A stretch of 64,000 nucleotides of DNA from Octopus sinensis (GCF_006345805.1 NC_043014.1:34658001-34722000); one strand, 5' to 3'; shown: positions 5,306-64,000, numbered from the stretch's first letter. Notes: a model not told the origin generated them from the sequence alone. Translations and numbers: made by a program.

Positions 5306-5711
5306 TCATGGGGACAGATTTTTTTCTTCCTGACAAAATTCATAAAATATGGAATCAATAAAGGATAGGCTTTTACATAGTTTCAAGGTATCCAATTTTA
5401 TGCACAAGTGGTTGACACAATGACCCAAAACTTTAATAAAAGTACTTTACCAATGTCCTGCATTGTATGACATAAATCAGAACCTTGTGACTGCAAAACA
5501 ACCTCATACACTTATTGAGTGTGTGTATGGTGTGAAATCACCTGAGGAAATGAATCAATGATGATGATCAACTGGATGCCCACAGATGCTGTGTACTACA
5601 CTGTAATCATCCCAGGAATATGGGCTGTGATCTTAAGAGACATGTGATTTGTGGTAATGCATGTAGTGATGCATTAAATGTTTATAAATTCCATCCTAGG
5701 ATTATAGTTAT

Positions 5712-5950
5712 TATTATTAATATTATTATTCTCTTTACTCTTTTACTTGTTTCAGTCATTTGACTGCGGCCATGCTGGAGCACCACCTTTAATCGAGCAA
5801 CTCGACCTTGGGACTTATTCTTTGTAAGCCTAGTACTTATTCTATCGGTCTCTTTTGCTGAACTGCTAAGTGACGGGGACGTAAACACACCAGCATCAGT
5901 TGTCAAGCAATGCTAGGGGGACAAACACAGACACTAAAACACACACGCAC

Positions 5951-5983
<33 letters not shown>

Positions 5984-6150
5984 TACGATGGGCTTCTTTC
6001 AGTTTCTGTCTACCAAATCCACTCACAAGGCTTTGGTCGGCCCGAGGCTATAGTAGAAGACACTTGCCCAAGGTGCCACACAGTAGGACTGAATCCAGAA
6101 CCATGTGGTTGGTAAGCAAGCTACTTACCACACAGCCACTCCTGCGCCTA
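5712..6150 (-). mobile_element. SINE family A
   Basis: Reverse-complement consensus ending ctcctgcgccta. Confidence 0.88.
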
Positions 6151-6163
6151 TTATTATTTTTAT

Positions 6164-6194
<31 letters not shown>

Positions 6195-13571: not shown

Positions 13572-15137
13572 TTCCGGGTAGAGGTAGGGGTCCACCAAGG
13601 CTCAGTCCTCAGCCCCCTCCTATTTATCATAGTCCTCCAGGCAATAACGGAGGAATTCAAGACAGGATGCCCCTGGGAGCTCCTCTATGCTGATGACCTT
13701 GCTCTAATTGCTGAGTCACTATCAGAACTGGAGGAGAAGTTTCAGGTATGGAAGCAAGGTTTAGAATCGAAGGGCCTTAGAGTCAATCTAGCTAAAACCA
13801 AAGTCCTAATAAGTAGGAAGGTAGACAAATCACAAACGCCTTCGATCTGTAGAAAAGGTGTAGGTAGAAACTCTATAAGATACACCAAGTGTAAGCTATG
13901 GACACATAAGAGGTGCAGCAATGTCAAAGGAAGGCTAACTAGGAAGATAGTTTTTGTATGTGGCAGATGCTCAGGAGCAATAAACACTGAAAATGCTCTG
14001 AGACCAACTTCTGCCACATTCCAGGGAGAAAAACTAGAAATAGTTGATAGCTTCTGTTACCTAGGTGACCAAGTCAGTAGCGGGGGTGGGTGTTCTGAAA
14101 GTGTAACTGCTAGAGTAAGAATAGCTTGGGCAAAGTTCAGAGAGCTCTTACCTCTACTGGTGCCAAAAGGCCTCTCGCTCAGAGTAAAAGGCAGACTGTA
14201 TGACACATGTGTACGAACAGCCATGCTACATGGCAGTGAAACTTGGGCTGTGACTGCTGAGGATATGCGTATGCTCGCAAGAAATGAAGCCAGTATGCTC
14301 CGATGGATGTGTAATGTCAGTGTTCATACTCGACAGAGTGTAAGTACCTTGAGAGAAAAGCTGGACCTAAGAAGCATCAGTTGTGGTGTGCAAGAGAGAC
14401 ATTTGCGCTGTGGTAAGAATGGATGAAGATAGTTGTGTGAAAAAGTGCCACACCCTAGCGGTTGAGGGAACCTGTGGAAGAGGCAGACCCAGGAAAACCT
14501 GGGACGAGGTGGTGAAGCACGACCTTCGAACTTTAGGTCTCACTGAGGAAATGACTAGAGACTGAGACCTTTGGAAGTGTGCTGTGCGTGAGAAGACCTG
14601 GCAGGACAAGTGAGACCATAACCCGTGGCCTCTACATGGGATGTGCCAGTCCACTTATGCATACCTTTCCTTCTTGGGACACAAAACTCTACTTTTGAAG
14701 ACCTGTTGAGGCAAGTGAGAATCGAAATCGATCAACATCAATGGAAATTGCAGCTGTGATACCAGTGCCGGTGGCACGTAAGAGAACCATCCAAACGAAG
14801 CCGTTTGCCAGCGCCGCCCCGACTGGCCTCATGCTGGTGGCACGTAAAAAGCACCATCCATTTCGTGGCCGTTGCCAGCCTCGCCTGGCCCCCGTGCCGG
14901 TGGCACGTAAAAAGCACCATCCGATCGTGGCCGTTTGCCAGCCTCGTCTGGCACCTGTGCCGGTGGCACATAAAAAGCACCCACTACACTCACGGAGTAG
15001 TTGGCGTTAGGAAGGGCATCCAGTCGTAGAAACATTGCCAGATCAGACTGGGCCTGGCGCAGCCTTCTGGCTTTCCAGACCCCAGTTGAACCGTCCAACC
15101 CATGCTAGCATGGAAAGCGGACACTAAACGATGATGA

Positions 15138-33300: not shown

Positions 33301-33520
33301 CAGACATACACATGATGGTTGTAAATAAGTATCACTGTCACACAAACAGGTGAAAGGTGAGTCTGGCTGTAGAAAATCTGCTTCAGTAAACTCTAACCCA
33401 TGCAAGCAAAGAAAAGAAGACATTAAAACAATGATGATGATGTATACTGTATTCCAACTGCTGTGTGTCAAACAATAACAATACAACCCACTTTTAATTC
33501 TTCTTCCCCCTTTTTTTCAG

Positions 33521-33648
33521 ACATGTAATCTTACCCAGTGATATTGCAAAACTTGTGCCCAAAAACCACTTAATGACAGAAACTGAGTGGCGTAACCTTG
33601 GAGTGCAGCAATCTCCAGGATGGATTCATTACATGGTGCATTCTCCAG
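33521..33648 (+). CDS. CKS1: CKS coding exon 2
   Basis: tttttttcag| acceptor; 128 nt in the correct phase; [42 protein letters not shown] is the CKS core; donor cag|gtttgt. Confidence 0.97.
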
Positions 33649-33926
33649 GTTTGTGTTACTGTCTTCAAAATTTCATACTCCTTATTTCCTCTTTTAATAA
33701 TTTTGTTATTTACTTTATACTACAAACAATTACTGTGTTAGTCAGAAGATATCTTATATGTTGATTACCACTAAGATTTATTGTTCATCTCAATTAGGTA
33801 TGTAATTTAATTATTTAATCAACCCACTGGTTCTTTTTTTTTTTTAATTAAAATTGTGGGTTAGTGAAAGGAGGTGTGGTGCCCATAGCCCTTGTTAGCC
33901 TTCTTAGACAGGTGAAATCAGTCAAA

Positions 33927-37210: not shown

Positions 37211-37301
37211 AGTAGTAGTAGTAGTATGTATGTATGTATGTTTGTGCTAATAATGCATGTGTGTTCATTTAATAATTTTCTTTACTGTTATATTTCCATA
37301 G

Positions 37302-37378
37302 AGCCTCATGTATTGCTGTTTCGGCGTCCAGTGCCATTACGTGAAAAACCGCAGCATGTGAACAAGCCAGGGGAGTAA
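37302..37378 (+). CDS. CKS1: CKS coding exon 3 (terminal)
   Basis: tttccatag| acceptor; in phase (G|AG) EPHVLLFRRPVPLREKPQHVNKPG, containing the CKS EPH.LLFRRP motif. The stop is TAA 37376-37378 on my reading; if I miscounted the G run it falls about 18 nt later. Confidence 0.93.
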
Positions 37379-38879
37379 TGGCTGGATTTATGTTAAAATC
37401 TCCTGAAGATGTGTATATGTCACTTACTCACTCGGCTATCTTGCCACCATCACCACCAGTAGCACCAGCAGTCAGCTACCACAGAATTTCCCATTTTATT
37501 CTTTCAGGCTGAAATATATTTCTCCTAGTATTTAAAATTGGAACAGAGACAGTTCCTGATTTGATTCTAATCCAATAATAGCAACAGTATTGAATAAGTT
37601 TTTTTTTTTTTTTTTTTTTTCGCTTTCCAAATTAACCTTCATTAGCTTGAAGTCAAGACATCTTTGCTGGCTGCTGGTATTTTCCCTGGAAATGTTTCTT
37701 GTCATATGTTAAGTTTTTGCTAAGTGTTGTTTCACTGAATATTTTATGTTTGATCTCCATTCCTTCTTATAAAAACTGAACAAGACAAATCATATCAACA
37801 TCATACATTTTTTTTTTATATTTCCATTTTATTTCCTTTTTTTATTTGTTCTTCTAACACAGATGCTCACAACCTGTGCAGCAGCATCTCCTCAGGGCAT
37901 TATAAGCTCTCAAAGGAACAGCAAATGTCAAGGAGACACTAGTGTTTAGTAAAATTATATTTCTTTGAAATAAAATATTTAAACCAAATACAAAACTTAT
38001 ATTTTAAACCCCTTTTCAAAAGAAAATTTTATGTAAGGATTAAAATATATCAACAAAACATTGTGTTATCAATGAGTAAGAACGTGTCTGATGATGAACC
38101 AAAGTCCAAGATAATTTTGTTACATAAGTCCTTAATTTCTTTAGTAATTTTTCAAAAACTTTAATGTAGAGAGTACTAGCCCACACAAATATCTATAAAG
38201 AGGCAAATGTTGGCAGTGGCAATGCTGATGATGGTGGTGGTAAATGGCTCTTTGTAGACTATGCAACTATTAAACAGTATTCAGTGACTGAGTTTTCAAA
38301 CAGTAAAAATATATACGTTTCTCACCCATCAGCATATTTTTAAGCAGATTTCTTGAATTTTTATTCTTTTATTTCACTGGTTCCAGTAATTGGGCTGTGG
38401 TCAAGCTAGAGCACTATATTCAGGGATTTTTCCACAATCATAGTAATTCTAGCACTTATTTTAGTCTGGCATTTATTTTATCATTTGACTCAGTTACCAT
38501 TCTGACACATCACTGAAACAAGTAAAAGATAGAAGAAAATACCTATGTTCTAAAGTGTTATGCACACTCTACATTAGTGCAACTTTATCCAAATACACAC
38601 ATACATGCACATACCAGCCAATTTAGATATCCACCAACACCAAGAGCTGTCTTGATTTTAAACCAAGTGCCTTGCCAGTTTGTTTGTGATTGACTTGAAT
38701 TCTGCGAAGAAATAAACTTAAAATAAATCCCAAAGAAAAAACATACATACATGATAAGCTTCTGTCAATTAAATTTCACTCACAAAGCATTAGTCAACTC
38801 AAGGCTATGGTAGAAGACACTTTCCCATGGTGCCATTCAGTGGAATCAAGCAAATTGGAGCCATAATTATAGTATCTGA

Positions 38880-45170: not shown

Positions 45171-47801
45171 CATCACAACAGGCAAAGAGCTTATTGGTGC
45201 TGATGACAGCAATACACAAAGCCTACCCTCACTCTTTTCTTTCATTCAAATTCTTCTCTGGTATTCCAATCTACAATCCCAGCTGAACAATATAGCATTA
45301 TGTTGTAAAAATACTATCAACCTACTGATGATTAGGTTTTGCTGTCAGGAACATTTAATAGTTTGTCAATGGATTTTATTTGTATTCTGTGTACATTTGC
45401 ATGTGTGTTGGAGTGTTTTAATTTCATTGTTTAGATCCCCTGGAGCTAACCAGTCTTGTTAATGATGTTGAAAGAAAACTGTAATAAATAAAACAAAAAT
45501 ATATAATATATAATAATAAGGAATTATTTTGATAACTTTTTAAAAGAATAAATTGCAAGTATTTAATAAATATGGTTTAATGTGATTTTACACAGACTAT
45601 TAATTTCATCTTTTCAACTGGCTTGGGATAATAAAAATTAATACCAAAATATAATGATATACCTCATATTTGTTTTGATAAATCAATGTTAAATTTGCTT
45701 GATCAATGAAACTATCATTATATTATAGTCTTAGTACCTGAGTACTCCAATAAGTGCTTGTACCTTTGATTGTAATACTCAAGCAGACCTAGAATGACAG
45801 TGTGTGTGGGAAGATACAAAGCTGGGTATTCAAGTTTCAGGTACTAAAGATCCTGTCTATCTAATAGGCCTCTGTAAGGTTCCTGTCCACCTTAGCTCAC
45901 TCATGGAACTTCGTTTGAAATAAGGCTTTGATATAAGACATCTGTCTAAGGTGTTGTGTGGTGGTGGTGGTGGTGAGGTTGAACTTGGATCCTCATGATT
46001 AAGAAGTAACTTCTTGACCACTAAGCTATGGACATATGTAGATAGAAATAAGTACAAAAGGTGAGGTTAGCAGGCCATTAAAGAGCAAATGTCATAAAAC
46101 AAGACAACCACATTTTATATACCTTAAATTGTCAGAGCTACACTCATAAACCGAGACTAACATATTTCATATGCTTTAAGATGATACAGCCTCTTTCTAC
46201 ATCCTTAAAGACAGCCACTGTCTGGGTATTTTAAATTTCGGTAGCCATACTCCATATATGTTAAACTGAATTAGCAAATTACAATTTCATGAGTGATGAT
46301 AGAAGATACTTATTTATATGACAGAAACTGATTTGTTGATCAAAATTGTTGTTAGGACACTTTGTAAGTTTCACATGCCATAATGAAGAATCATTTTACA
46401 TTTTACAAACTGGCATAAATTGGAGGGGGTCCATGTGATCTGGCATATACAACAACAAAGAAACTTGATCAACTTTATTACGTTTTTATTACAGTATAGA
46501 CTGGATGCAATTTTATTGCACCACAACTACTAGAGAAGTTGTTCACAGCTTGAAAAAAAAATTCCTTTCTACTCTGAATCAGTTGTTATTCAGAATCATT
46601 GCTCTCCTGGCCTGGTAACCATGCAACAATTTACGAAATTTATATTTTGTTCATATGTTGCTCACTTTGTATCTAACTAATTTGTATTGCTACAAAATGT
46701 ACTATTCATTTCAAGTGAAATGAGATATTTTCAACTGGTAATCAAAACTGCCTTTGTGAACTGAAGTAATGAAGATTATAACTTCAATCTGTAAAGAAAC
46801 ATCCAAAGACTATTCTAGTAGTCAGTTCATTATGCCTGCATTTTGGAGAGGAATTATGAGTACTGATAGCAACGTTACTTGAACTTAAGTTTGTTTGTTC
46901 TGATTTTGTAATGAATCTCAAAGCTTTATGAATAACATATTTGAAATTATTTTATGGCTTAGTTAGATGAGAAAATAGCATCACCCACAATCTTTTGCAG
47001 CTCTTCAAGACTGATTGTAGGAAGAATGGAATTATTTTAAAACTGGCGACCTATCCTGAATGTTACAACAAACTATACTCAGCTAAAAGATATGATACTA
47101 AAGATAAAAATGTATGACTCAGATAGTGGTGCTACATATCTTTAGTAAGCATATGCTTATATTGAAACTAAAGATATGAATGTATAACCCAGGGAGTGGT
47201 GGTATGCCAGACGACAAATTAAGTTTGCTACCCAAGAACAGAAACAATCCCCCTAAAAGGATTCCATACAGTTTCTGTTCACTAAACTTCACTTGAAAGG
47301 TTTTGGTCAATCTGAAGTTGCAGTAGAAGATGCCTGAGGTACTACACTGTGAGAGTAAACTTGATACCATATGGCAATGATTAAAATAAACAGAATAGAT
47401 GGGAGCAGCAATCTGAAAAGTTTTGTTATCAAGTTGTTGAAATATCTGAGACATTGACAGAAGAATTCTTTTGTGATATGGAACCAAAGTTTGCTTCAAA
47501 TGTTTGGGCATGATCATTCAGACAATTACTTGATTTATTTACTGATTAACGTTTGGTATTTATTTCATCCATTTAAATGTGATGTTGATGAGCCAACAAG
47601 AAATCTACATTATCATTCAAACTGATCACCTTTCTACTGCTAAACCTTTCACAATGAACTTACTAATCTTTGATGTATTTAAGTTTGAACTGTAAGGACA
47701 ATATACCTTATTCTAATGGGAAACTGTTTAGTGAGTTATTCTTCAATTATCTGCCTTCATGTTTCAACTTGAGCAGAAAAACTTCACAATAAAAACAATT
47801 G

Positions 47802-48019
47802 TATGAGGGGATGCTATGTTCCTGACTTTGGAGTAATGAAAATACAGGAGGATGAGTTAATTATGATTTTATTCAACATATTCCCCTCTCAGATCCATAC
47901 ACTTATTGCAGTTGTTCTTAAGTTTTTCTAAGCCCTATAAAAGAAATCTGAAGTTTGGGTCTCCAACCAGGAACTTTCGTGATACCCTTAAAGCTAAGAA
48001 CTTTTCAGCATTGCCTCAT
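47802..48019. mobile_element. Mariner-derived MITE in the 3'UTR intron of the Ig gene
   Basis: Imperfect TIRs tatgaggg..gct..gttcctgacttt / aaagctaagaacttttcagcattgcctcata with TA ends. Confidence 0.5.
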
Positions 48020-48223
48020 AGCAGCAACAATTTTAAAACAACAATGATAAAAGTGAATACTATACTCAATATATATCTGTTCAAAAAGTGAATTCGAGCA
48101 CTTCAGTATGTCTAACTTAAGTAAATTCATCTAAAAGAGGCAATATTTAATAGAAGTATATAACAAAATAAATTTTAAATTTTAAAGAATTAAAAACAAA
48201 CCAAAACCTTCAAACTTACATAT

Positions 48224-48303
48224 TTAACTTTTCATCACAGAATATACCATATTTGCAGCAACTAAAAGTACCAACATCATATCCATTCGAGGTAGACTGG
48301 ATC
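48224..48303 (-). CDS. Ig-domain gene: last coding exon with a GPI-signal-like hydrophobic tail
   Basis: tgtttttgcag| acceptor, phase 1; (G)SSLPRMDMMLVLLVAANMVYSVMKS then TAA at 48226-48224; GTAAGT donor 4 nt after the stop (exon ends at 48220). Confidence 0.75.
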
Positions 48304-48683
48304 CTGCAAAAACATTTTTATTTGTCTTAATCATTTTGAAAATACAAACTGTTATTTCTAATTTGTGTCTCATACATAGTAATCATTATGTTCACAATAC
48401 ATCAAGAGATATAGCATTTCTATTTTTTTCATTTTACAATAGGAATTCCTAATGTAATGCAAATCTGGTAAATTTAAATAGTGTTTAAATAAAATATTAA
48501 TTATTATGATTTTGATTAGTTTAAATTAGCCAGGCTATTTTGAACACTGTATTTCATTTAATCTGATACCTAATGATGTTAAAATAATTAATCTGATATT
48601 TCTTAACTAATTAATTATTTAAGAAATATCTGTTCTCATTAGATAGAGAATATACCATTTATTTTGTATTAGTGTCTACTCAC

Positions 48684-48861
48684 CGTTGACTTTCAATGCC
48701 ATTGGTCTGGAAGTTTCTGGACGTGGTGTCTTCTGAACAGTACACCTGTATATGCCAGTGTCCCAGCCACGAGGGATGGTCACATATAGGGTAGCAATTG
48801 AATTACCAGCACTGATGTGGGTGTTGATTAGGTAAGATCTTCTTAACATATCATTATCCAC
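48684..48861 (-). CDS. Ig-domain gene: C-terminal half of the Ig domain
   Basis: attattcag| acceptor and G|GTGAGT donor; 178 nt, phase 0 to 1; VDNDMLRRSYLINTHISAGNSIATLYVTIPRGWDTGIYRCTVQKTPRPETSRPMALKVN, containing the Ig DxGxYxC motif; joins the 51815 exon in frame. Confidence 0.9.
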
Positions 48862-49651
48862 CTGAATAATGATTAGAAATATATAGCATCATCAACAACA
48901 ACAACGTCATCAATCAATCAATAATTAAATCAATATCTAATTCACCCAAGTTGAGATAATTAGAGTCAATTGATCAACAACTTCTAAGTAGAATTATCCA
49001 TCAGTGGGTCATTAACCTTACAGAAAGTGCCTCTCAAAGTTATATTAATCATAGTAAAATAAAATGTATGTTGTGATTAGAGGGAAGTTCTAAGTTTTTG
49101 AGTAGGGAACACTTCTTATTTTATAAATTTTATTAATTGCATTTTCCTGACAGTGGCCATCATAGGTTGTCTGGGATTCTATAATTATTTTTACTTTTGT
49201 ATTTTTGATATTTATGGTAGGTGATAGAAGGCAGTGCCATCCAGTGCACCTCCATAGTGATGGGCATGAGAGCTGGTTCATATTTATCTGACTTCTACTC
49301 TTTGACCTGTCCAGCATAGGAGACTCATTTTTACCTCTGGGAAGAGTTAGTCCATACTAGCCTAGCCTTTATCCTTTAACCTGTTCAACACAGGAGGCCA
49401 TAATAGGAGCTTGTGCTCTGCTGGCATAACTCACAGGATCATTGAGGTACACAAGCTACCACACCACTGCAAGTAGTGGACCTAATGGTGGTTGCAACAG
49501 AGAAGACTCCACTGAAAGTATCTAAGGGCAAGGTTCATGTGAAGCCTATGAACAAGAACACTCTCTATAAAGGGTGTCTACATGGTTTCTGCCTAAATAG
49601 TCTAAATGGAATGGAAATAGCTGAATGAAAAATATATTATATTATAATATA

Positions 49652-49813
49652 TAGGCGTAGGAGTGGGTGTGTGGTAAGTAGCTTGCTTACCAACCACATG
49701 GTTCGGGGTCAGTCCCACTGCGTAGCACCTTGGGCAAGTGTCTTCCACTATAGCCTTGGGCCGACCAAAGCCTTGTGAGAGGATTTGGTAGATGGAAACT
49801 GAAAGAAGCCTGT

Positions 49814-49858
<45 letters not shown>

Positions 49859-50095
49859 GTGTATATATGTATGTATGTGTATAAGTTTGTGTGTCTGTGT
49901 TTGTCCCCCAACATCGCTTGACAACCGATGCTGGTGCGTTTACGTCCCTGTAACTTAGCGGTTCGACAAAAGAGACCAATAGAATAAGTACTAGGCTTAC
50001 AAAGAATAAGTCCTGGGATCGATTTGCTTGACTAAAGGCGGTGCTCCATCATGGTCACAGTCAAATGACTGAAACAAGTGAAAGAGTAAAAGAGT
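49652..50095 (+). mobile_element. SINE family A
   Basis: Consensus match. Confidence 0.88.
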
Positions 50096-50269
50096 ATCAG
50101 TTGGTAGGGTCTTGACTTAAAATCCACTGCAGGCATTTTGTTATGTATTTGAATTAAATACTTAATTTTGTGTGACAAAATTTCCCTACCTCTCAGTGAA
50201 CAAGTATTAGCCCTTTAGAGAATGTTAATGGCAAAAATCTTTAAGCTTTTCTGAGGAAAACATCCATTT

Positions 50270-50580
50270 GATTGTGCTCATCTTATTTCTTTCCAGCTGT
50301 CACACATCATCTGCATTCCATGTCTATCTATGGAATTCCTACCTGTTCTTTTTTCACATACTGAGCCTGGCTTTTTCTTGGTGGCAACACCTTGTCTCTT
50401 CCTTACCAATTATAAAGCCTTTGTCTTTGCTATGTTTAATTTAAGTTCTCTCAATTCGAGGCTTTGATTCCATGTTTGAAATTTCTGCACAGATTCGGCT
50501 ATGAGAATTAAGTCTTTGGCATTTAGAAGTTTCCACTGACTGTTAGTTTTAAATTCCTCTGCTATGGCCTGGGGAACTAT
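50270..50580 (-). mobile_element. Degenerate RTE RT remnant
   Basis: Frameshifted homology to the YADDL..AES..FQ.W..LE..GL..N..KTK segment at ~13690-13810. Confidence 0.5.
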
Positions 50581-51277
50581 ATTAACCCTTTAGCATTTAT
50601 ACTGGCCATATCAGGCCCAAAAACTCTACATGTTTTATATCCAGTTTTCTTAGTGACCTCTAGACTGCAGAGTTTAATATCCCTACAAGGTCTTTCTCTA
50701 AGTCAACAAATCTAAGGTCTTTCTCTAAGTCAAAAAATCTAAGTATAGCGGCATACTCTTTGCTAAAACCTTCTCCTTTAATGTCTCACGAGAAAAACCA
50801 AATGTCTTGCAGTATTCCCTTATGTCCTTTTTCATGCTGATTTCAATACATGCCAAATTCCTTGAAAGAAATACTAGTCAAGTGCTGGAGTTAATTTAAT
50901 CACCAATTGCACCTCCTAATTTGTGGCCTCCTTTATTATAATCTTTTATTTGTGGATTTCAAAATTTAGAAGCAGTTATATATTTAAAGCAGGAGAGGAA
51001 GAAACAGAGAGAAGAGGTGAGTTAGTGAATAGAGTAATGAATACAGAGAGAAGGAGGTTGAAAACAGAGACAGGTTGGAGAGAGAGAGAGAAAGAGAGGG
51101 AGTGTTGGAGAATAGGGTGAATGAAAAGGGAGATGCTATAGAGAGGGGGAAGTGGAAAATAGGGAATGTAGTTGAGAATAAAGAGGGGATAGCATGTGGA
51201 GATAAGTGGAGAACAGAGAGAGAAAAAAGACTGGAGAATAGTAAGAGCGACAGAGGAGCAAAAAATTACATAAGCAT

Positions 51278-51688
51278 ATAGGCGCAGGAGTGGCTGTGTG
51301 GTAAGTAGCTTGTTTACCAACCACATGATTATGGGTTCAGTCCCACTGCGTGGCACCTTGGGCAAGTGTCTTCTATTATAGCCTCGGGCCGACCAAAGCC
51401 TTGTGAGTGGATTTGGTAGACGGAAACTGAAAGAAGCCCATCGTATATATATATATATATATATATATATGCATATCTGTGTTTGTGTGTCTGTGTTTGT
51501 CCCCCTAGCATTGCTTGACAACTGATGCTGGTGTGTTTATGTCCCCGTTACTTAGCAGTTTGGCAAAAGAGACCGATAGATTAAGTACTGGGCTTACAAA
51601 AGAATAAGACCCGGGGTCGATTTGCTCGATTAAAGGCGGCGCTCCAGCATGGCCGCAGTCAAATGACTGAAACAAATAAAAGAGTAAG
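51278..51688 (+). mobile_element. SINE family A
   Basis: Consensus match. Confidence 0.88.
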
Positions 51689-51718
51689 CGTATATACAAT
51701 TACATAAATTGATAGATT

Positions 51719-51768
<50 letters not shown>

Positions 51769-51814
51769 GAGAGAGATCAACAGTTATATTTGATTAATTG
51801 ATAAATATAATTAC

Positions 51815-51981
51815 CCAGCTTGCTTTCTTTGGAGGTTCAATGGTAACAATATCTCTACCATCTTTGGAAATAGTTATGGCATATACTTTAGTGGCGTACT
51901 TTTTGTCTATACATGTGATCTTCACTTTTTCTTTTCCTCCAGCTCTTACTTCACCAGGAGTTATTACAATGTCAACAGATT
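51815..51981 (-). CDS. Ig-domain gene: N-terminal half of the Ig domain
   Basis: cttctcttttcag| acceptor and |gtaatt donor; 167 nt, phase 1 to 0; (E)SVDIVITPGEVRAGGKEKVKITCIDKKYATKVYAITISKDGRDIVTIEPPKKASW, with the B-strand Cys in KITC. Confidence 0.85.
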
Positions 51982-52162
51982 CTGAAAAGAGAAGATGGAT
52001 TTATATAGCAGATGAAGTAGAGAGAGAATCTATGAGTTGGTCAAAAGGTTTTGAAGGTATATATAAATATATGTAGAAGGAAAAAAAGGCATTAAAAAAT
52101 CCAGGCAGATACCAATAAAGCATTCGGTCTTAAACAAATTTGGTTGACTATATCCAACAATC

Positions 52163-52445
52163 GTGGAGGCGCAATGGCCCAGTGGTTAGGGCAGTGGACT
52201 CTAGGTTGGAGGATTGCAGTTTTGATTCCAATACCGAGCGTTGTGTGTGTTTATTGAGCAAAAACACCTAAAGCTCCACAAGGCTCTGGCAGGGGGTGGT
52301 GGCAACCCCTGTTGTACTCTTTCGCCCCAACTTTCTCTCGCTCTTTCTTCCTGTTTCTTGAGTAATGCTGTGATGGACTGGCATCCCGTCCAGCTGGGGG
52401 GAACACATATGCTACAGAAACCGGGAAACCAGGCCCATGAAAAGG
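52163..52445 (+). mobile_element. tRNA-derived SINE: head as at 19295, tail as at 6600
   Basis: ggaggcgcaatggcccagtggttagggcag..aacacctaaagctccac. Confidence 0.8.
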
Positions 52446-53829
52446 GTGCATAAAATTAAAAAAAGAAATATCCAATTATCAGATACCAATAAATGCAAGT
52501 AGAATACACACCCCAGGTAATTCCTCATGTGTGACAAGTAGATCCTAATATCATTTAGAAAAATTTCAAGAAATTCAGAGTATTTGACAACAAAAATATG
52601 TATAGAGAAAATCACATTTTTATTTTAGAATTCACCTTATAAAACCGACAATTGTTTCTATTATATTAACATATTTAGATATTGAAAATATCGTTGAAAT
52701 TAATATTTCTGAAAATACAAATTAACTCAGTATTTTTAAGGTGATCCAGAATAAGTTAAATTCAAAGTGAACTAAGGAAATATTTCCAGTACACGAGCAC
52801 CTTGTAGGCAAGATTCAACTGTTAGAGAACTACATCATATTCCAATATCTGCTTTGGCATTGTATCTAATACCAGCCACTTTACAGAGTGTACTGGGTAA
52901 ATTTAACATTGCACTAACACCAGTGACATCCCCATGTAGCCCATGAGACAAAGATCCCCTTTAAATGAGTGTGCTACAATTGGAAGAAAGGCTGCTTTAT
53001 GCTTGTTGATGAAAGGTTAAAGTATGAAGGAAGAGGATGGAATAGGTTTCTTGCTGTATAGGAGATACCTGGTTACTCACATTACGTAAAAGTGAGAGTA
53101 ATTGGGGAAAGGAAGATAAGGATGGTGATAAAATGTCAGAGTGGGCCATGGAAGCAAATAAATAGGGAGGGTGGGTCATGGAAGCAAATAAATAGGGAGA
53201 CAGTGAGTGATGGTTAAAGATGGGGTAATGATGCAAATATACTGAACGATGGACAAGGATTGAGTGGGGTGTTGATGATAAATATGAATTGGATGGTAAA
53301 AAAGGATGAAAACTAAGTATGATTAGTGATATATATGAGATAGATGGGGGAGAGATTGAGGAGAGTATGTGTGGACTGCAGTACAGAAGGAATGAAAAGC
53401 AGTAGAATAGTAATACTACGGTAGATGGGAAAAAGATGAGAAAAGGACGTGGTGTGTGGGTGGGTAAGTTTTGCATGAATGCGAGTGGAGAGACAAACAT
53501 AGTGCATGCAGAGAGTGAGAGATTTATGATGATATGGGCATACGGGTAGGTTAATAAGAGGTGGTTTGGTGGGGAGAGAGAGAGAGAAAATTTGGTAGTA
53601 TGGAGGGATGGGGTGATCAGTGTAAAATGTAAGTGGAGAGGGACAATGTTAAGAATGACAGTTGGATGTCAAGTGAAGTGGTTCCTGGTAGTAAGAAAGA
53701 TTACTGATATCATAGAAAAGACAATAAAATATGTAGTTCTGTCCTCATTTAATTACAGCAGTAGAATACTGCAGTTATGCAAGTGATTGAAAGATCAGTG
53801 ATTGAGGAATGAGGGTTGGCAGTGGAGAA

Positions 53830-54090
53830 GGTTTGACAAGGAAATTAGATGAGGGGCCCAGAACCTCAGTTTTGCAGAGATGTGTGGATTTTCTTGAGTA
53901 CTACATATCACCAATTATTCCAATTCTTTCTCATCTTCTCTATGAGATTCAAAGCCCTGAGATTGTTCCATGTCTCATGAGTCTTCCTCTTCTACAAGTT
54001 CCATCCAACTGAAGAAACTGGAACTTCTCTATACAGCTGTCCTCATCCATCTAAAGATGTTTCATACAACATCTGATTCCTCTTCGACCT
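53830..54090 (-). mobile_element. Degenerate RTE C-terminal remnant
   Basis: MDEDSC..DGTCRRGR resembles the peptide at 14420-14500. Confidence 0.55.
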
Positions 54091-54306
54091 AATTTTTCTC
54101 TCAATACAGTTGTACTTTGTTATTCATGTACACTTGTTGCAGCTTCATTTCTTTCTAGTCTTCACACATCCTTTGCATGACCCCTTTTGCTTTCTCTCTC
54201 TCTCCCTTCACCTCTCTCTCTCTCTCACACACACACACATACATACTTTTTATCAAAGCCATAAAAGTTTTCACAAACTGTTACTCAGAGTTTCATGTTA
54301 TTTCCA

Positions 54307-54337
<31 letters not shown>

Positions 54338-54709
54338 TCTCTCTTTATATATATCTGGATGGATGGACAGATGAACAAATGCAACAAGATGGATAGATGC
54401 AACAGACTTCTATATAGTTTCTGTCTACCAATAAGAACTTGTCAGTTTGTATTAAAACCATAGCAATAAAAAGATTACTAACAATAACAAGTGAAATCTA
54501 AATACTGCAATTAACTGTAAATTAACTATAAATTAACTGTAACTGTCTACTTGAGCTAATCTGTAGTTTATTACATTAAAGAGTCACTTAAAAGACAACT
54601 CTACACTGAAGTCCTACATCAGACTCACTGAAAATAACTTCAAAACATGGCTCTACCAGCAGAGGCATTCCTTCATCAATAATGCTCAAAGACACTATTT
54701 GACTGCTTC

Positions 54710-54945
54710 ATCATCATCATCATCATCATCCTTTAATGTCTGTTTTCCACACTGGCATGGGTTTGATGGTTTGACCAGAGCTGGCAAGCTAAAGAGCTGC
54801 ACCAGGTTCCAGTCTGATTTGACTTGTTTTCTATGGCTGGATGCCCTTCCCAATGCCAATCGCTCCACCTTGTGTGCTGGATGCTTTTGATGTGCCACTG
54901 GGATGAACACCTTTATGTGGCACCAGCACAAGTGCTTTTACATGG
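54710..54945 (-). mobile_element. RTE-type 3' tail copy
   Basis: (CAT)n followed by the reverse-complement consensus. Confidence 0.75.
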
Positions 54946-55149
54946 GTCATCCTAGACTTTAGGATGTATAAGCATAGAATGGATGGTTCACATCTTGGCT
55001 CCATCACCGGTGATGACAAACTGAGAAAATCCTCATATTGTGAAAAAGTTCCTGTGGCTTAAATCTCAGGTCGGAACTGCAAATGCACACCAAAATACTT
55101 TTGGGCTGGGAGAAATTATCTTAATACAAATTTATATACATACATATAT

Positions 55150-55190
55150 GTATATATATCTATATCTATATCTATATCTATATCTATATC

Positions 55191-55275
<85 letters not shown>

Positions 55276-55540
55276 CAGATTTCTGTACACTCTAAAATGA
55301 ATGTTAATAGGAGAGTCAAGAGTAAAAGTCTATCAGACTGACTTAATGATAAGACTGAAATGTTTAGTCTTCACTATGGACACATTAACTTAAAGAAACA
55401 AACAGAAATAGATATACAGATAAACAAACAAAAAATAGAGTCAGATAGACAGACAGAGAGGGAGAGAGGAAGAGAGAGAAATAGAGAGAGAGAGAGAGAC
55501 AGACAGACAGATAGATAGATAGATATACAGACAGACAGGC

Positions 55541-55587
<47 letters not shown>

Positions 55588-55604
55588 CAGATAGACAGAT
55601 AGAC

Positions 55605-55667
<63 letters not shown>

Positions 55668-55668
55668 C

Positions 55669-55708
<40 letters not shown>

Positions 55709-55757
55709 GGATGGATGGATGGATGGAATGATGGATGGAGGGATGGATGGATGGATG
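55150..55757. repeat. Compound microsatellites: (TATATC)n, (TA)n, (GA)n, (GATA)n, (GGAT)n
   Basis: Direct inspection. Confidence 0.95.
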
Positions 55758-56463
55758 GGCTACTTTGATTAATGTGGTCTTAGGTTCCTTGTACAATAGG
55801 AAAAAGTTGGAGCAGTTTTGATCATAAGTTTGCTTAATTAGAGGTGACTTGGAGCTAAACAACTCAGATCAGGCAAATAAGAAAACAATGTAGTAAAAAG
55901 ATTACTAACAATAACAAGTGAAATCTAAATACTTTTGTTTTAACTATTCCAGCTAAGGTCATGCTGGAGCACTGCCTTTGCAAGATAGTCTGATTTAAAT
56001 TGATTTTTACTAATAAAGTTCACAAAGTAGAATAAATTTTTTAATTATTCTTAAAAGAATTTTTAATTTTATGAATCAGCACTAATGGCCCTTTACTGGG
56101 CTCCCAGATTGAAGTTGAGTGAGGATGTAGTGGTGATTTATTTAGGTTGAGTGACGATATAGGATGGATATAGTTAAAGCTGAGTGACACTGTAGCAATA
56201 ACTTAACTGAGATTGGGTTGACATGGAATGACTTACTGAGGACAATGTGGATAAGTAACTTAGATGATTTTGAATAATGATGTTGTGGCTCCCTTGCTGT
56301 GGTTCATGGTGGTGGTGTTATTTAACCTCTGGCCAACCTTGACCTCGGAAGTCAATAATCAAAGCTTTCCAGCCTTGATCATCCAATCTTTTATTCTGAC
56401 ATAGTGTATCTAGGACTACATTATCCAGTTTACTTTTCTCACTTGAAGACATTACAGTGTTGA

Positions 56464-56630
56464 TTTGCCTGCTATTTTTAGCAGGTTGAAAATTTGCCTG
56501 CTATTTTTAGCAGGTTGAAAATTTGCCTGCTATTTTTAGCAGGTTGAAAATTTGCCTGCTATTTTTAGTAGGTTGAAAATCTGCCTGCTATTTTTAGCAG
56601 GTTGAAAATTTGCCTGCTATTTTTAGCAGG
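56464..56630. repeat. 29-bp minisatellite (TTTGCCTGCTATTTTTAGCAGGTTGAAAA), ~6 units, each with a hairpin
   Basis: Period 29 measured (56464, 56493); CCTGCTA-TTTT-TAGCAGG palindrome. Confidence 0.95.
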
Positions 56631-57339
56631 CTTCCTCATTGGCTCTTTCTGATAGATTTAATTAAATTCCACTGAACCATCATCTCATAACAGGTAATTC
56701 CAAAATAAATTAGTAACCATCAATATAAACAAGTATTACGGAAGATTTAGATCCAGTTGAGCTAATTCTGGATTAACGGCAGTTATTTAATCTTCTAATG
56801 TCATGTCATCATAAGGATTATCTTTTAGGAAAAAAAAAACAATGAAAATTTATGAACAATTACTGTTCTATGAGATCTCTTTGATCAAATTGTTGCTGCT
56901 GTTATTGTTTACCTCTAAGTGAGCTCTGATCCAGCAAACTTATGATCTAAGGTATTATGAATTCGATCATCCTTGCCTTTCATGTATATTCAAAACTGTA
57001 TTTTTAAAGGGTAAGGAATGATTTGAGGTTCTTGTAGGACAAGGGGGCCTTGTAGGTTCTTCCTCATTGGCTGAGGTTTACTGTTGATCAATAAACAGTG
57101 AGTAATGTTATTGACTGTCTAAACATCAAAGTAGAAACCATAGAATGCTTGGGGTTTGGTGTGGTATTTGGTATTTGTAAAATGGAAACTAAGTGATTTG
57201 TAAGAAGGCCATTCCGGCATTCTGATGTCCTTTGGGTAGGAAAAAAAAATCCCTAAAATATATCTTGAAAATGATAGAGAAGTTTTCTAGAGGAGATTTG
57301 ATCTGCTAAATAGAGCAGTTGTCTTGCTGATATTGGTGA

Positions 57340-57575
57340 AAACAACAACAACAACAACAACAGGAGGAGGAGGGGGAAGAAGAAGAAGAAGAAGAAGAAG
57401 AAGAAGAAGAAGAAGAAGAAGAAGAAGAGAAGAAGAAGAAGAAGAAGAAGAAGAAGAAGAAGAAGAGAAGAAGAAGAAGAAGAAGAAAAGAAGAAGAAGA
57501 AGAAGAAGAAGAAGAAGAAGAAGAAGAAGAAGAAGAAGAAGAAGAAGAAGATAGCAACAATAACAACAATAATAA
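57340..57575. repeat. (AAC)n/(GAA)n microsatellite
   Basis: Direct inspection; source of the poly-E/R/K and poly-F/S ORFs. Confidence 0.95.
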
Positions 57576-57694
57576 TCCCTTCTAATATAGGCACAATAAG
57601 AGTAGAAGTTAGTTGATTACATTGACTTTAGTGCTCAACTGGTGCTTTTTTTCTCAACCTTGAAAGGATGAAAGATAAAGTTGACTACAGAATT

Positions 57695-59044
57695 GTTGGC
57701 TTCCCAACTGAAAGAGAAGAATCTTCTAGAGAATGGTGTCTCTATAACCTTTTATCTGACTTAGCATGAAGTGTTTATAATGGAAGGCTGCTACAAGTTC
57801 CTTTCTTTCTTCACAAAAGAGGAAGAGCTGGTGTTCTACAGAGATGTCAGTGGGCCTCTTAATAAACTTAGCATTGAGGAATGGCGCTTTTTCATAGACA
57901 GCTCTACGTATAGTTTAAAACATGTATTGTTGTACAACGGAAATGTGTATGGCTCTGTCTCACTTGACCACTCAACAACTCTGAAGGAAAAATATGAAAA
58001 AATTAAGTTGGTTTTAATGAAGATACTGTATCATGATCATAAATGGGTCATCTGTGTTGACTTAAAGATGGTAAATTTTCTCATGGGACAGCAATCTGGT
58101 TATACCAAATACCCATGCTTTCTTTGCATGTGGGACTATAGAGACTGCATAAACCACTATGTTAAGAAAGACTGGCCGCCTTGAACAAATATGGTTCCAT
58201 ATAGAGCTGCCAATATATTGGAAGAACCTTTAGTTAAGCAAGATAAGATCATTTACCCCACTCTCTGCACATCAAACTCAGATTGATTCAGCAATTCATC
58301 AAAGCTCTTGGCAAAAATGGGGAGTGCTTCAAGTATATCTGCAGTGTATTTCCAGACTTGATAATTGAAAAACTTAAAGCAGGGATTTTTGATGGACCAT
58401 AGATCCGTAAGCTCTTGATGGACACAAATTTCATGAAAATGAAGCATCAGCTTGGCTAGCCTTTGCAGAAATAGAGCAAAATTTCCTTGGAAAACACAAA
58501 AGTGAAAACTATAAAGATCTTATTACCAATTTGATATCAACTTTACATGATACTGGTGTGAATATGAGCATCAAAATGCATTATCTTTTCCTGAAAATAT
58601 TGGAGATGTTAGTGATGAACAAGATGAATAATTCCATCAGGACAGCAAGGAGATGGAAATTTGGTACCAAAGACGATGGGACGCTATAATGATAGTGGAC
58701 TATTGCAGGTGTTTAAAATGAGATTCTGCTGTTGCTCAATATTCACGGTGCATAAAGAAGTGAAAATTTATTCGTTGAATTTTCTGCCAAAAATCTTTGC
58801 CAATGCGCATTTTCAATTTTGAATTTTTATTTGTACTTTGTTTTGTTTTGTGTTACGCTCTCTTTATTGATTCATAATATATGCCTCTTCCATGAATAAA
58901 ATACTTATTCTATCAGGTCTAGTTTTCTGACTATTCCTGATAGAGAAAAACTGAAGTTATTTTTGAATTTCACTGGCAAAATCACATAAGAATTTATTGA
59001 AATATTCCAGGTACCAGACAAAAAAATCTTTTTGTTGCTGAGTG
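57695..59044 (+). mobile_element. Chapaev3 (CMC)-like DNA transposon, 5'-truncated and decayed
   Basis: LKEKNLL, EWRFFIDSS..SLKHVLLYNGN, WVICVDLKMVNFLMGQQSGYTKYPCFLCMWD, GIFDGP.IRKL, NMSIKMHYL; right end ..tttttgttgctgagtg (CAC...GTG termini). The superfamily name is from memory. Confidence 0.7.
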
Positions 59045-59712: not shown

Positions 59713-59734
59713 ATAATAATAAGACTTCTGAATA

Positions 59735-59775
<41 letters not shown>

Positions 59776-59786
<11 letters not shown>

Positions 59787-60277
59787 AGGTCACAGAAAAC
59801 GAGAAAGCAACCATACTCTGGGATATGCTGATACACACAGATAGAGAAATTAAGGCCAACAGACCAGATATAGTTGTCAAAGATCATGAAGAAAAAAAAT
59901 GCTTTCTAATTGATGTATCAATACAGGCTGATGACTACGTGTCTCTAAAAGAAATGGAGAAACTCTCAAAATCCAAAGACCTGGAAATGGAGGTAACCAG
60001 AGTGTGGAATCTAAAAACAGAAACAATTCCTATCATAGTAGGTGCATTAGGCATGATAAAAAAATATTCAGACAAATACATAACAAAAACACCAGGACTT
60101 ACAAACACATATAACATACAGAAAGTTGCACTACTAGGCACTGCACACATCCTACGCAGAACACTTGCCATACAATAACCATCAGAGCATCACAACAAAT
60201 CACAGCACATACCCAAGGCACACAGAGCTGCGCTCGGTAGTGAAGTGAAAGCACGCTATAAAAATAAAACTACTGAA
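59776..60277 (+). mobile_element. R4/Dong-like RLE non-LTR element, 3' copy
   Basis: ILWDMLIHTDREIKANRPDIVVKD..CFLIDVS..EKLSK.KDL (PD-(D/E)xK RLE motif); embedded in (AAT)n. Confidence 0.88.
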
Positions 60278-60299
60278 TAATAATAATAATAATAATAAT

Positions 60300-60512
60300 C
60301 TTTTCTTCTATAAGCACAAGACTTGAAATTTGTGGAGAGAGTAGTATTTGATTACATTATCCTCCAGTGTGCAACTGGTGTCTATTTCAATGAACCATAA
60401 AGGATGAAAGGCAAAGTTGACCTCAGTGATATTTGAACTCAGAACATAAAAAATGGAGGAAATATCGATATACATTTTGTCCAGTGTGCTAAAGATTCTG
60501 TCAGCTTGCTGC
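60300..60512 (-). mobile_element. Decayed SINE family B (similar remnant at 59105-59232)
   Basis: aaaggatgaaaggcaaagttgacctc..atttgaactcagaac. Confidence 0.7.
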
Positions 60513-60524
60513 TTTAATATTAAT

Positions 60525-60560
<36 letters not shown>

Positions 60561-60562
<2 letters not shown>

Positions 60563-61690
60563 CATACCAAAAACATTTAATGAAAAGAAACATAACAAGT
60601 AACTACAGAATATGTGGAGATGGACAAGAAACAATAAATCATATTATCTCTGGCTGCCCAGTCCTGGCTAAGAAGGAATATATTCACAGATGCGATAGAG
60701 TTGGGACCTACATACAATGGAAGCTATGCCAACATTATGGAATAACAACAGAAAAAAGATGGTATAGGTACACACCAGAAAAGATCACAGAAAACGAGAA
60801 AGCAACCATACTCTGGGATATGCCAATACACACAGATAGAGAAATTAAGGCCAATAGGCCAGATATAATTGACAGAGATCATGAAGAAAGAAAATGCTTT
60901 CTAATTGATGTATCAATATCAGCAGATGACAACGTTTCTCTAAAAGAAATGGTGAAACTTTCAAAATACAAAGACCTGGAAATAGAGGTAACTTGAATGT
61001 GGAATCTAAAAACAGAAATAATTCTTATCATAGGTGCAGGAGTGGCTGTGTGGTAAGTAGCTTGCTAACCAACCACATGGTTCAGGGTTCAGTCCTACTG
61101 TGTGGCATCTTGGGCAAGTGTCTTCTGCTATAGCCCCGGGCCGACCAAAGCCTTGTGAGTGGATTTGGTAGACGGAAACTAAAAGAAGCCTGTCGTATAT
61201 ATGTATATATATATATATGTGTATGTTTGTGTGTCTGTGTTTGTCCCCCTAGCATTGCTTGACAACCGATGCTGGTGTGTTTATGTCCCCGTTACTTAGC
61301 GGTTCGACAAAAGAGACCGATAGAATAAGTACTGGGCTTACAAAGAATAAGTCCTGGGGTCAATTTGCTCGACTAAAGGCGGTGCTCCAGCATGGCTGCA
61401 GTCAAAATGACTGAAACAAGTAAAAGAGTAAAAGAGAAAAGAGTATAGTAGGCGCATTAGGTATGATAAAAAAATATTCAGACAAATACATAACAAAAAC
61501 ACCAGGAATTACAAATATATATAACATACAGAAAGTTGCACTACTTGGCACTGCACACATCCTACGCAAAACACTTTCAATACATTAACCATAAGAGCAT
61601 CACAACAAACCATAGCACATACCCAAGGCACACAGAGCTGCGCTCGGTAGTGAAGTGAAAGCATGCTATAAAAATAAAACTACTGAATAA
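60561..61690 (+). mobile_element. R4/Dong-like RLE non-LTR element with CCHC knuckle, split by a SINE
   Basis: (Y)RICGDGQETINHIISGC..EYIHR..WKLC..RPDI..LIDVS; continues after the SINE at ~61447. Confidence 0.9.
61031..61445 (+). mobile_element. SINE family A inserted in an R4/Dong-like copy
   Basis: Splits the TIPIIVGALG coding segment. Confidence 0.9.
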
Positions 61691-61716
61691 TAATAGTAAT
61701 AATAATAAGTAATGCA

Positions 61717-62180
61717 TATAATGCAAAGATCCTACGGGATTTTATGATTCAGTGCGACCATGAGATAGAGAATAGGAAATCAGACATAGTGTTAATTGAG
61801 AAAGAAAGCAAACGATGCTGGATCACAGATATAGCATGCCCAGCTGACAACAAGGTGTGTGATAAGGCAGAAAGAAAAATCGATGTATATAACAAGTCAG
61901 CTTGGGAGGTTAAGCAGTTGTGGTCGCTGAAAAAGGTGGTTGTTTTAGTACCAATAACTGTTGGGGCCCTAGGAACAGTGAGTAAAAATCTTGAGGAGTA
62001 CACGGAACAAATAGGGTCTGCAATAAGGGTGGAACACTTGCAGAAAACAGCACTGCTTGGACCCGCTCAAATACTCCGGATCGTGCTAAAAAAATAAGTG
62101 GTGTTACCTTAGTTCACTGGTAGTGAACAGTTGGCACCGTAGTACATCTCCAGCGTTAGAAGCTGTGCAAAGACAATAAA
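61717..62180 (+). mobile_element. Divergent R4/Dong-like RLE 3' copy
   Basis: IQCDHEIENRKSDIVLIEK..CWITDIACP..TVGALGTV..LQKTALLG.AQILR. Confidence 0.8.
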
Positions 62181-63914: not shown

Positions 63915-64000
63915 CTGTAATGGAATGGTTACCGGAATGTAACAGTTATTGTCTATGCTGAAACAAAGATGGTGATGTTGACTCCAGCAAAAGAAAGACG

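Follow-up and report, generated by a model that had tools for sequence, protein, structure and literature searches.

The window analyzed here is a 64,000-nucleotide stretch of Octopus sinensis DNA (GCF_006345805.1, NC_043014.1:34658001-34722000), read as one strand from 5' to 3'. It belongs to chromosome CM016876.1 (GCA_006345805.1), which bases 38224-64000 match at 100% identity, and its DNA is animal, AT-rich, and laden with repeats. The minus strand of the window carries most of LOC118766974, a gene annotated in RefSeq as encoding an "uncharacterized protein" of 159 amino acids (XP_036366768.1). LOC118766974 is a single-copy gene whose four coding exons span 42.8 kb and specify a 159-residue precursor; the window holds the 3' three-quarters of the gene. 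The three exons located in the window have canonical splice sites and encode one immunoglobulin (Ig)-like domain followed by a C-terminal tail that resembles a glycosylphosphatidylinositol (GPI) signal. In the order in which the gene is read, its features in the window are the following.

51815-51981, minus strand: exon 2, with a phase 1 acceptor (ending in ttttcag) and a phase 0 donor (beginning with gtaatt), translated as ESVDIVITPGEVRAGGKEKVKITCIDKKYATKVYAITISKDGRDIVTIEPPKKASW; its product, (E)SVDIVITPGEVRAGGKEKVKITCIDKKYATKVYAITISKDGRDIVTIEPPKKASW, supplies predicted strands A to C'/C'' of the Ig-like domain, its first half, and holds Cys42 and the Trp-less C strand VYAITISK.
48862-51814, minus strand: intron 2, 2953 nucleotides, phase 0, interrupting the Ig domain.
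48684-48861, minus strand: exon 3, reading VDNDML...LYVTIPRGWDTGIYRCTVQKTPRPETSRPMALKVN-G, with a phase 1 donor (beginning with gtgagt); its product, VDNDMLRRSYLINTHISAGNSIATLYVTIPRGWDTGIYRCTVQKTPRPETSRPMALKVN(G), supplies strands D to G, the remaining half of the domain, with the DxGxYxC motif and Cys114, plus a Pro-rich stalk.
48224-48303, minus strand: exon 4, (G)SSLPRMDMMLVLLVAANMVYSVMKS, the GPI-type C-terminal signal, with a TAA stop codon at 48224-48226.
48146-48151, minus strand: candidate polyadenylation signal ATTAAA, 76 nucleotides past the stop codon, from a motif scan only.
47868-47873, 47559-47564, and 47534-47539, minus strand: further AATAAA motifs, likewise from a motif scan only.

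Spliced together, the three exons give residues 19 to 159 of XP_036366768.1 at 100% identity, and exon 2 is itself a 100% tblastn match to residues 19 to 75. An earlier account of this locus, made by a model from the DNA alone (the sequence-only reading), had quoted a set of peptides; every one of them was reproduced by minus-strand translation, and the limits that it gave, 48224 and 51981, are the exact ends of the in-window coding sequence. The gene is incomplete in the window. A signal-peptide exon was sought inside the window and was not found there; it was located in the wider locus instead, where exon 1 (signal peptide MEIFRFGVFVTVLCAYLV, 18 residues) lies ~39 kb upstream of exon 2, past base 64000.

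How widely is this protein distributed? We combined three word-indexed protein searches with an exhaustive HMMER search over 1.84 billion representatives, covering ~15 billion proteins in all. These searches revealed a family of only six sequences: three Octopus proteins, one Argonauta protein, and two sequences designated P0006 and P0021. Scanning JGI metagenome contigs with the family alignment added no further member. The sequence-only reading had suggested looking for clustered paralogs, and none was found: tblastn detected no paralog or extra Ig exon in the window or in ~100 kb around the gene, and no paralog was present in the annotated proteome. Because only six related sequences were recovered and no paralog was found, "orphan," the label that the gene had been given, is a fair one. 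LOC118766974 is a lineage-specific gene of the Ig superfamily (IgSF) that is already in RefSeq and UniProt and is uncharacterized.

The orthologs of LOC118766974 are closely similar in length and layout. In O. bimaculoides, the ortholog is LOC106881629, whose UniProt name is "Ig-like domain-containing protein"; its isoform X1 has 159 amino acids and is 94% identical to the O. sinensis protein, and isoform X2 has a different first exon and an unchanged tail exon. Identity among Octopus species is 94 to 98%. The Argonauta hians ortholog, also of 159 amino acids, is 81 to 82% identical and is encoded by four exons with matching phases. When the 62.8-kb Octopus locus was compared with the 33.7-kb Argonauta locus, the four coding exons were the only unique collinear conserved DNA, and all remaining matches were to a multicopy short interspersed nuclear element (SINE). 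Nucleotide identity between the two loci was 78% in exon 2, 82.6% in exon 3, and 75.8% in exon 4, the last of which retained 69% amino acid identity. The ratio of nonsynonymous to synonymous substitution rates (dN/dS) between Octopus and Argonauta was 0.093 overall (Nei-Gojobori; dN 0.11, dS 1.19), and by region, the ratio was lowest in the Ig domain (0.067), intermediate in the signal peptide (0.14), and highest in the tail (0.21). The gene is under strong purifying selection.

The neighborhood of the gene could be compared as well. On the plus strand, 33504-33650 and 37295-37381 are exons of a gene for CKS (cyclin-dependent kinase regulatory subunit, PF01111), which is convergent with the Ig gene. 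A CKS gene is also found downstream of the Argonauta ortholog, and synteny is therefore conserved.

The two remaining family members are more distant. P0006 is an open reading frame (ORF) on an ENA metagenome contig that covers a homolog of exon 2, with a phase 1 acceptor and a phase 0 donor after the Trp as in the octopus; exon 3 of this partial relative was not found in the remaining 4.2 kb of its contig. P0021 is a complete 164-amino-acid ORF on a 1203-nucleotide JGI metatranscriptome contig (marine, 3300018952) and is 45 to 47% identical to the octopus protein. Its contig resembles a full-length cDNA, with a SMART-type 5' end (ACATGGG) and AATAAA near the 3' end, and the protein has the layout of the octopus one, namely, a signal peptide, an Ig domain, and then KVNGSNAPRLDAMLGVAVVAHMIWAVARRHS. 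Since the ORF of this cDNA is uninterrupted, the mature mRNA of the relative joins the Ig exons to a tail of the GPI type. At the nucleotide level, neither contig resembled the Octopus or the Argonauta locus; our guess is that both may come from decapodiform cephalopods. P0006 (contig positions 10046-10366) and P0021 also have two additional, neighboring cysteines (E/P-C-C-G-K) between strands A and B, where the octopods have A-G-G-K. This pair may form an additional disulfide or a metal site.

We then asked what kind of domain exons 2 and 3 encode. In V-like Ig domains, the B- and F-strand cysteines are ~65 to 75 residues apart; in the octopus protein, Cys42 and Cys114 are 72 residues apart. 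All four full-length members have both cysteines, and the partial P0006 has the first. The F-strand motif DxGxYxC appears as DTGIYRC or DSGLYRC in octopods and as DSGLWKC (Tyr to Trp) in P0021. Cys42, Cys114, and DTGIYRC bear out the proposal of the sequence-only reading that both cysteines and the F-strand motif belong to one Ig-like domain. The same reading held that the C-strand Trp is replaced, and in this, too, it was right. Canonical Ig domains have an invariant Trp in strand C, ~14 residues past the first Cys. The octopus protein has no Trp between Cys42 and position 74, and in a Cys-anchored, nonsignificant alignment to an antibody heavy-chain variable domain (VH), Ile56 falls on the VH core Trp (YAITI versus YAITW). 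This core C-strand position is occupied by Ile in octopods and by Phe in P0006 and P0021; because the replacement is hydrophobic and conserved, the core position appears to be filled. With respect to gene structure, the usual rule for IgSF domains is that phase 1 introns lie at the domain borders. Phase 1 introns border the domain exons of LOC118766974, and an extra phase 0 intron after Trp74 divides the domain.

The two ends of the precursor were also informative. The N terminus, MEIFRFGVFVTVLCAYLVES, resembles a cleavable signal peptide in combining a core of hydrophobic residues (Kyte-Doolittle 2.7) with V-x-S/C at positions -3 and -1, and these characters are kept in Argonauta and P0021. 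A GPI signal typically consists of small residues at omega and omega+2, a polar spacer of 5 to 10 residues, and a hydrophobic end of 15 to 20 residues, with no cytoplasmic domain. The octopus C terminus, NGSS-LPRMD-MMLVLLVAANMVYSVM-KS-stop, fits a GPI-attachment signal. Thus, the claim of a GPI-type C terminus without a cytoplasmic domain held up, with the sequence hallmarks found heuristically in four of four full-length members. In all four, an invariant K-V-N-G-S supplies N133 or G134 as the candidate omega site and Ser as omega+2; a spacer of 5 to 6 residues containing P-R/Q-x-D follows ((S)LPRMD in the octopus); and 16 to 18 uncharged, mostly hydrophobic residues come next, with 0 to 4 residues left to the end. 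The Pro-rich stalk TPRPETSRP precedes the candidate omega site. The tail exon is used by the O. sinensis model, by both O. bimaculoides isoforms, and by the Argonauta model. Evolution of the tail is relaxed while its hydrophobicity is kept (dN/dS 0.21), which fits a cleaved propeptide.

On the basis of these features, we consider it fairly probable that LOC118766974 encodes a divergent V-like single-Ig protein that is GPI anchored at the cell surface. The signal peptide of exon 1 would direct the 159-residue precursor into the endoplasmic reticulum. Exons 2 and 3 would fold into one divergent V-like IgSF domain of ~113 residues closed by a Cys42-Cys114 disulfide, in which Ile (Phe in the distant relatives) would fill the core site of the usual C-strand Trp. 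Cleavage by GPI transamidase would fall at Asn133 or Gly134, within KVNGS, and the spacer and hydrophobic tail would be discarded. The domain would then be displayed on the outer membrane leaflet via the short Pro-rich stalk, with no cytoplasmic part, so that any signaling would have to pass through partners in the same membrane. We infer the GPI processing, the surface location, and the function. By analogy with known molecules of this build, the protein most likely serves in conserved recognition or adhesion at the cell surface, or as a co-receptor. A conserved recognition or adhesion function is favored, and a diversified immune receptor is unlikely, because no paralog was found, purifying selection is strong, and the Octopus proteins are 94 to 98% identical.

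Several observations weigh against this reading. With respect to the domain, the Pfam families ig, Ig_3, Ig_2, and V-set match the protein below threshold (E values of 0.0014 to 0.047; 13.8 to 19.3 bits versus cutoffs of 21.8 to 30). The exhaustive HMMER search returned full-sequence E values of 2e-13 to 1e-5 against multi-Ig proteins (CEACAM5-like, unc-89-like, Dscam, and hemicentin-like), and a local rerun showed these values to be built up from weak matches, all of them in the E-F-G half (profile positions ~66 to 117); no remote HMMER match in the rerun spans both cysteines. AlphaFold models, built for the full-length protein with 2 sequences and for the Ig domain with 5 sequences, had a mean predicted local distance difference test (pLDDT) score of 44 to 45, and a Foldseek search against the PDB found no match at an E value of ≤0.001. 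With respect to the C terminus, the GPI call is based on a home-made heuristic that considers the omega site, the spacer, and the hydrophobic end. At 16 residues, the hydrophobic run is short, Asn or His, Tyr, and Ser occur within it, and the RRHS that follows it in P0021 is a possible stop-transfer tail of a bitopic membrane protein. The sole N-glycosylation sequon, N133-G-S, overlaps the candidate omega site, so that glycosylation and GPI attachment would compete. One O. vulgaris gene model (P0003) omits the 48224-48303 exon for a 16-residue hydrophilic terminal exon. Last, our literature search found no paper that mentions LOC118766974 or LOC106881629.

Can the domain still be assigned to the Ig fold? 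Pfam Ig families match three of five family members at an E value of ≤1. The best PDB profile matches were CEACAM1, PECAM-1, CD226, and antibody VH, with a best E value of 0.009 and none significant. The low-confidence AlphaFold models have strands predicted at the expected A, B, C, C', E, and F positions, and the Foldseek matches listed, with a best E value of 0.06, are almost all Ig domains (VHH/VH and basigin). Exon 3 is the sole part with detectable similarity to standard Ig domains; because the remote matches cover the E-F-G half only, the half encoded by exon 2 is extremely divergent. These data make an Ig fold of the domain probable; we infer the fold of its N-terminal half, as well as the Cys42-Cys114 disulfide. 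The failure of standard profiles to recognize the domain can be explained by its divergent N-terminal half and by the replacement of the core Trp with Ile or Phe.

Is the hydrophobic tail cleaved off, or is it retained? In a type I membrane protein, the hydrophobic stretch would remain as a transmembrane helix, followed by only 2 to 4 cytoplasmic residues (KS, QS, HS, or RRHS), and no GPI would be added. Basic residues do follow the stretch in two members (K158; RRHS in P0021). However, 16 to 18 uncharged residues broken by Asn or His are short for a plasma membrane helix. The invariant N-G-S and the Pro-containing spacer 8 to 10 residues before the hydrophobic run form a GPI pattern that would have no role in a plain anchor, and the tail evolves faster (dN/dS of 0.21) than the domain (0.067) yet stays hydrophobic, as cleaved signals do. 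We therefore regard a retained transmembrane helix as unlikely.

The alternative exons of the O. vulgaris model bear on whether the protein is anchored at all. The sequence-only reading had considered the case of transcripts that skip the 48303 exon for a transmembrane exon. Skipping of this exon does occur in the one O. vulgaris model; the replacement, however, is hydrophilic rather than transmembrane and is not conserved in Argonauta. The exons specific to this model have the following counterparts in the window.

46711-46760, minus strand: possible alternative terminal exon with an AG acceptor, phase 1, encoding (V)HKGSFDYQLKISHFT-stop, located by tblastn of O. vulgaris P0003.
54629-54695, minus strand: homolog of the alternative first exon of O. 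vulgaris P0003, MSLSIIDEGMPLLVEPCFEVIF, located by tblastn.

The tail supplied by the 46711-46760 exon is VHKGSFDYQLKISHFT, and its acceptor is valid in O. sinensis too. Use of this exon would yield an anchorless isoform, which would presumably be secreted. The 54629-54695 exon starts with a GTG codon in O. sinensis, encodes a peptide without signal-peptide character, abuts a repeat, and shows no collinear conservation in Argonauta; we regard it as a probable alternative 5' exon or prediction artifact. Could the main product be a soluble, secreted single-Ig protein, made via the 46711-46760 exon or by shedding, with the membrane form being minor? This would agree with the O. vulgaris model and with the in-phase AG acceptor and open frame in O. 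sinensis. In the locus comparison, however, the GPI-type exon had a conserved counterpart in Argonauta and the 46711-46760 exon had none. In addition, four other gene models and the independent cDNA P0021 end in a hydrophobic tail, and the first exon of the same O. vulgaris model lacks a signal peptide, suggesting poor prediction. We consider a mainly secreted product quite improbable, and the P0003 model is regarded as a putative minor isoform or a prediction artifact.

A different identity for the GPI-anchored single-Ig protein that we favor had been put forward in the sequence-only reading: a membrane-tethered cephalopod relative of the gastropod FREP/VIgL immune lectins, serving as a variable immune or chemosensory receptor. 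By definition, a FREP carries one or two IgSF domains between a signal peptide and a complete C-terminal fibrinogen domain; FREPs are secreted products of a diversified multigene family (PMC7588048). Both groups are molluscan and have divergent IgSF domains, and those of FREPs needed custom hidden Markov models to be found (PMC7588048). The shared phylum, an IgSF domain so divergent that standard profiles barely detect it, and the absence of the C-strand Trp, which the sequence-only reading attributed to FREP IgSF domains too, would be compatible with such kinship; a literature search on Trp loss in FREP IgSF domains returned nothing usable. On the other hand, Pfam identified no fibrinogen or other lectin domain, and the 159-amino-acid ORF ends in a hydrophobic tail. 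FREPs are secreted, whereas the octopus protein has a membrane-anchor signal and neither a lectin domain nor a detected paralog, whether among the annotated proteins or in the ~100 kb surrounding the gene. The exhaustive HMMER search returned no FREP at an E value of ≤0.001, whereas generic multi-Ig proteins did score, and both the dN/dS of 0.09 and the 94 to 98% identity among Octopus species speak against diversification. Since each FREP feature tested was absent and no FREP was among the HMMER matches, the link is unsupported, and we rejected a FREP relative as very unlikely on the basis of the missing lectin domain, the negative HMMER result, and purifying selection.

An annotation artifact or decaying pseudogene made of chance frames among repeats is effectively refuted: the small gene, its huge repeat-filled introns, the lack of a Pfam match above threshold, the silence of the literature, and the absence of an Octopus transcript match from the protein collection would suit it, but dN/dS is 0.09 at near-saturated dS, conservation is confined to exons, splice phases and synteny are conserved, and the distant relative P0021 is a full-length cDNA. 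A fragment of a multi-Ig adhesion molecule was also ruled out, as complete products of 159 to 164 amino acids are specified by the cDNA and by the gene models of three species.

Repeats and additional open frames located elsewhere in the window, including introns 1 and 2, are listed here.

~49640-50100 and 51280-51690: two copies, in intron 2, of a SINE of ~450 nucleotides with (TA)n tails; a tRNA-like head (ggcgcaggagtggctgtgtggtaagtagcttg...) and a (TA)n/(TG)n microsatellite in its interior characterize the element, whose ~95-nucleotide core recurs many times in the Argonauta locus at 80 to 90% identity.
5700-6170 and 61100-61190: examples of the copies of this SINE at many other sites in the window.
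13572-14423, plus strand: open frame of 284 amino acids with a reverse transcriptase domain (Pfam RVT_1, E value of 8e-14), a retrotransposon fragment.
59732-62097, plus strand, in intron 1: three successive diverged copies of one retroelement ORF segment (…ENEKATILWDM.IHTDREIKANRPDI…KCFLIDVSI…), one of them with a weak zf-RVT match (E value of 0.005), and a SINE inserted at ~61000-61400.
57290-57620: purine-rich low-complexity tract of ~330 nucleotides (long A, G, and GA runs).
52000-58000: strongly positive GC skew (0.2 to 0.3 in 2-kb windows), probably repeat driven.
57765-58181 and 58411-58686, plus strand: open frames of 139 and 92 amino acids (…YHDHKWVICVDLKMVNFLMGQQSGYTKYPCFLCMWDYRD…) with no Pfam match, which look like a fragment of a transposase or domesticated element.

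Which known molecule does the proposed GPI-anchored protein most resemble? In its predicted architecture, the closest analogue is Thy-1/CD90, which is small and GPI anchored and has a single V-like Ig domain, a Cys28-Cys104 disulfide, and no intracellular domain (PMC6497726). The likeness extends to a signal peptide, one V-like Ig domain of ~110 residues, a single B-F disulfide (predicted to be Cys42-Cys114 in the octopus), and a GPI signal, in precursors of 161 amino acids for Thy-1 and 159 for the octopus protein (PMC6497726). When the family was aligned to human Thy-1 with hhalign (as a lead only), the cysteines, DxGxYxC, and the omega region were in register, and the counterpart of Ile56 was not Trp. 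Sequence similarity, in contrast, was not significant, with an hhalign probability of ~1%, a pairwise E value of 0.056, and 17% identity to the human sequence, and Thy-1 was absent among the matches of the exhaustive HMMER search. Membership in the Thy-1 family is not supported at these values of probability and identity; the description "built like Thy-1" stands. The Thy-1 domain is essentially encoded by one exon, and a second disulfide reaches its omega-site Cys; the octopus Ig domain, in contrast, is divided by a phase 0 intron. Thy-1 bears 2 to 3 N-glycans (PMC6497726), whereas the single sequon of the octopus protein overlaps the omega site.

The GPI-linked multi-Ig molecules (IgLON/OBCAM, lachesin, Dpr/DIP, and the CEACAM family) also combine an IgSF ectodomain with a GPI-type C terminus, and the weak best PDB and HMMER matches include CEACAM1, OBCAM, DPR1, and CEACAM5-like proteins. 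IgLON, lachesin, Dpr, and CEACAM proteins, however, have two or more Ig domains with the canonical C-strand Trp and are readily recognized by Pfam, whereas the octopus protein has one domain, is similar in the E-F-G half only, and yields nonsignificant single-domain E values.

A small Thy-1-like GPI-anchored membrane glycoprotein, Sgp1, was reportedly purified from squid brain in 1988. No Sgp1-type protein surfaced in our protein searches for the family, and the one potential N-glycan site of the family is a poor fit to a lectin-purified glycoprotein. Homologs of Thy-1 have been described in squid, according to a review (PMC6497726). Could the family described here be the gene behind squid Sgp1 or at least the cephalopod functional counterpart of Thy-1? 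It would then be an abundant neuronal, raft-resident molecule with a single, Trp-less V domain, one that originated in cephalopods or changed there past recognition. We put this forward as a doubtful proposition. If true, it would connect a 35-year-old protein-level observation to a genomic locus and would bear on whether Thy-1-like molecules evolved convergently in the two large-brained lineages.

LOC118766974 gives no evidence for FREP-like immune diversification in cephalopods. It offers a clean example of an Ig domain overlooked by standard profiles. In vertebrates, Thy-1-like single-Ig GPI-anchored proteins are major neuronal and immune surface molecules. LOC118766974 has the design of Thy-1, is single copy and strongly constrained, and was found in no more than a handful of close relatives; a conserved role in cell recognition in octopus tissues can reasonably be proposed for it.

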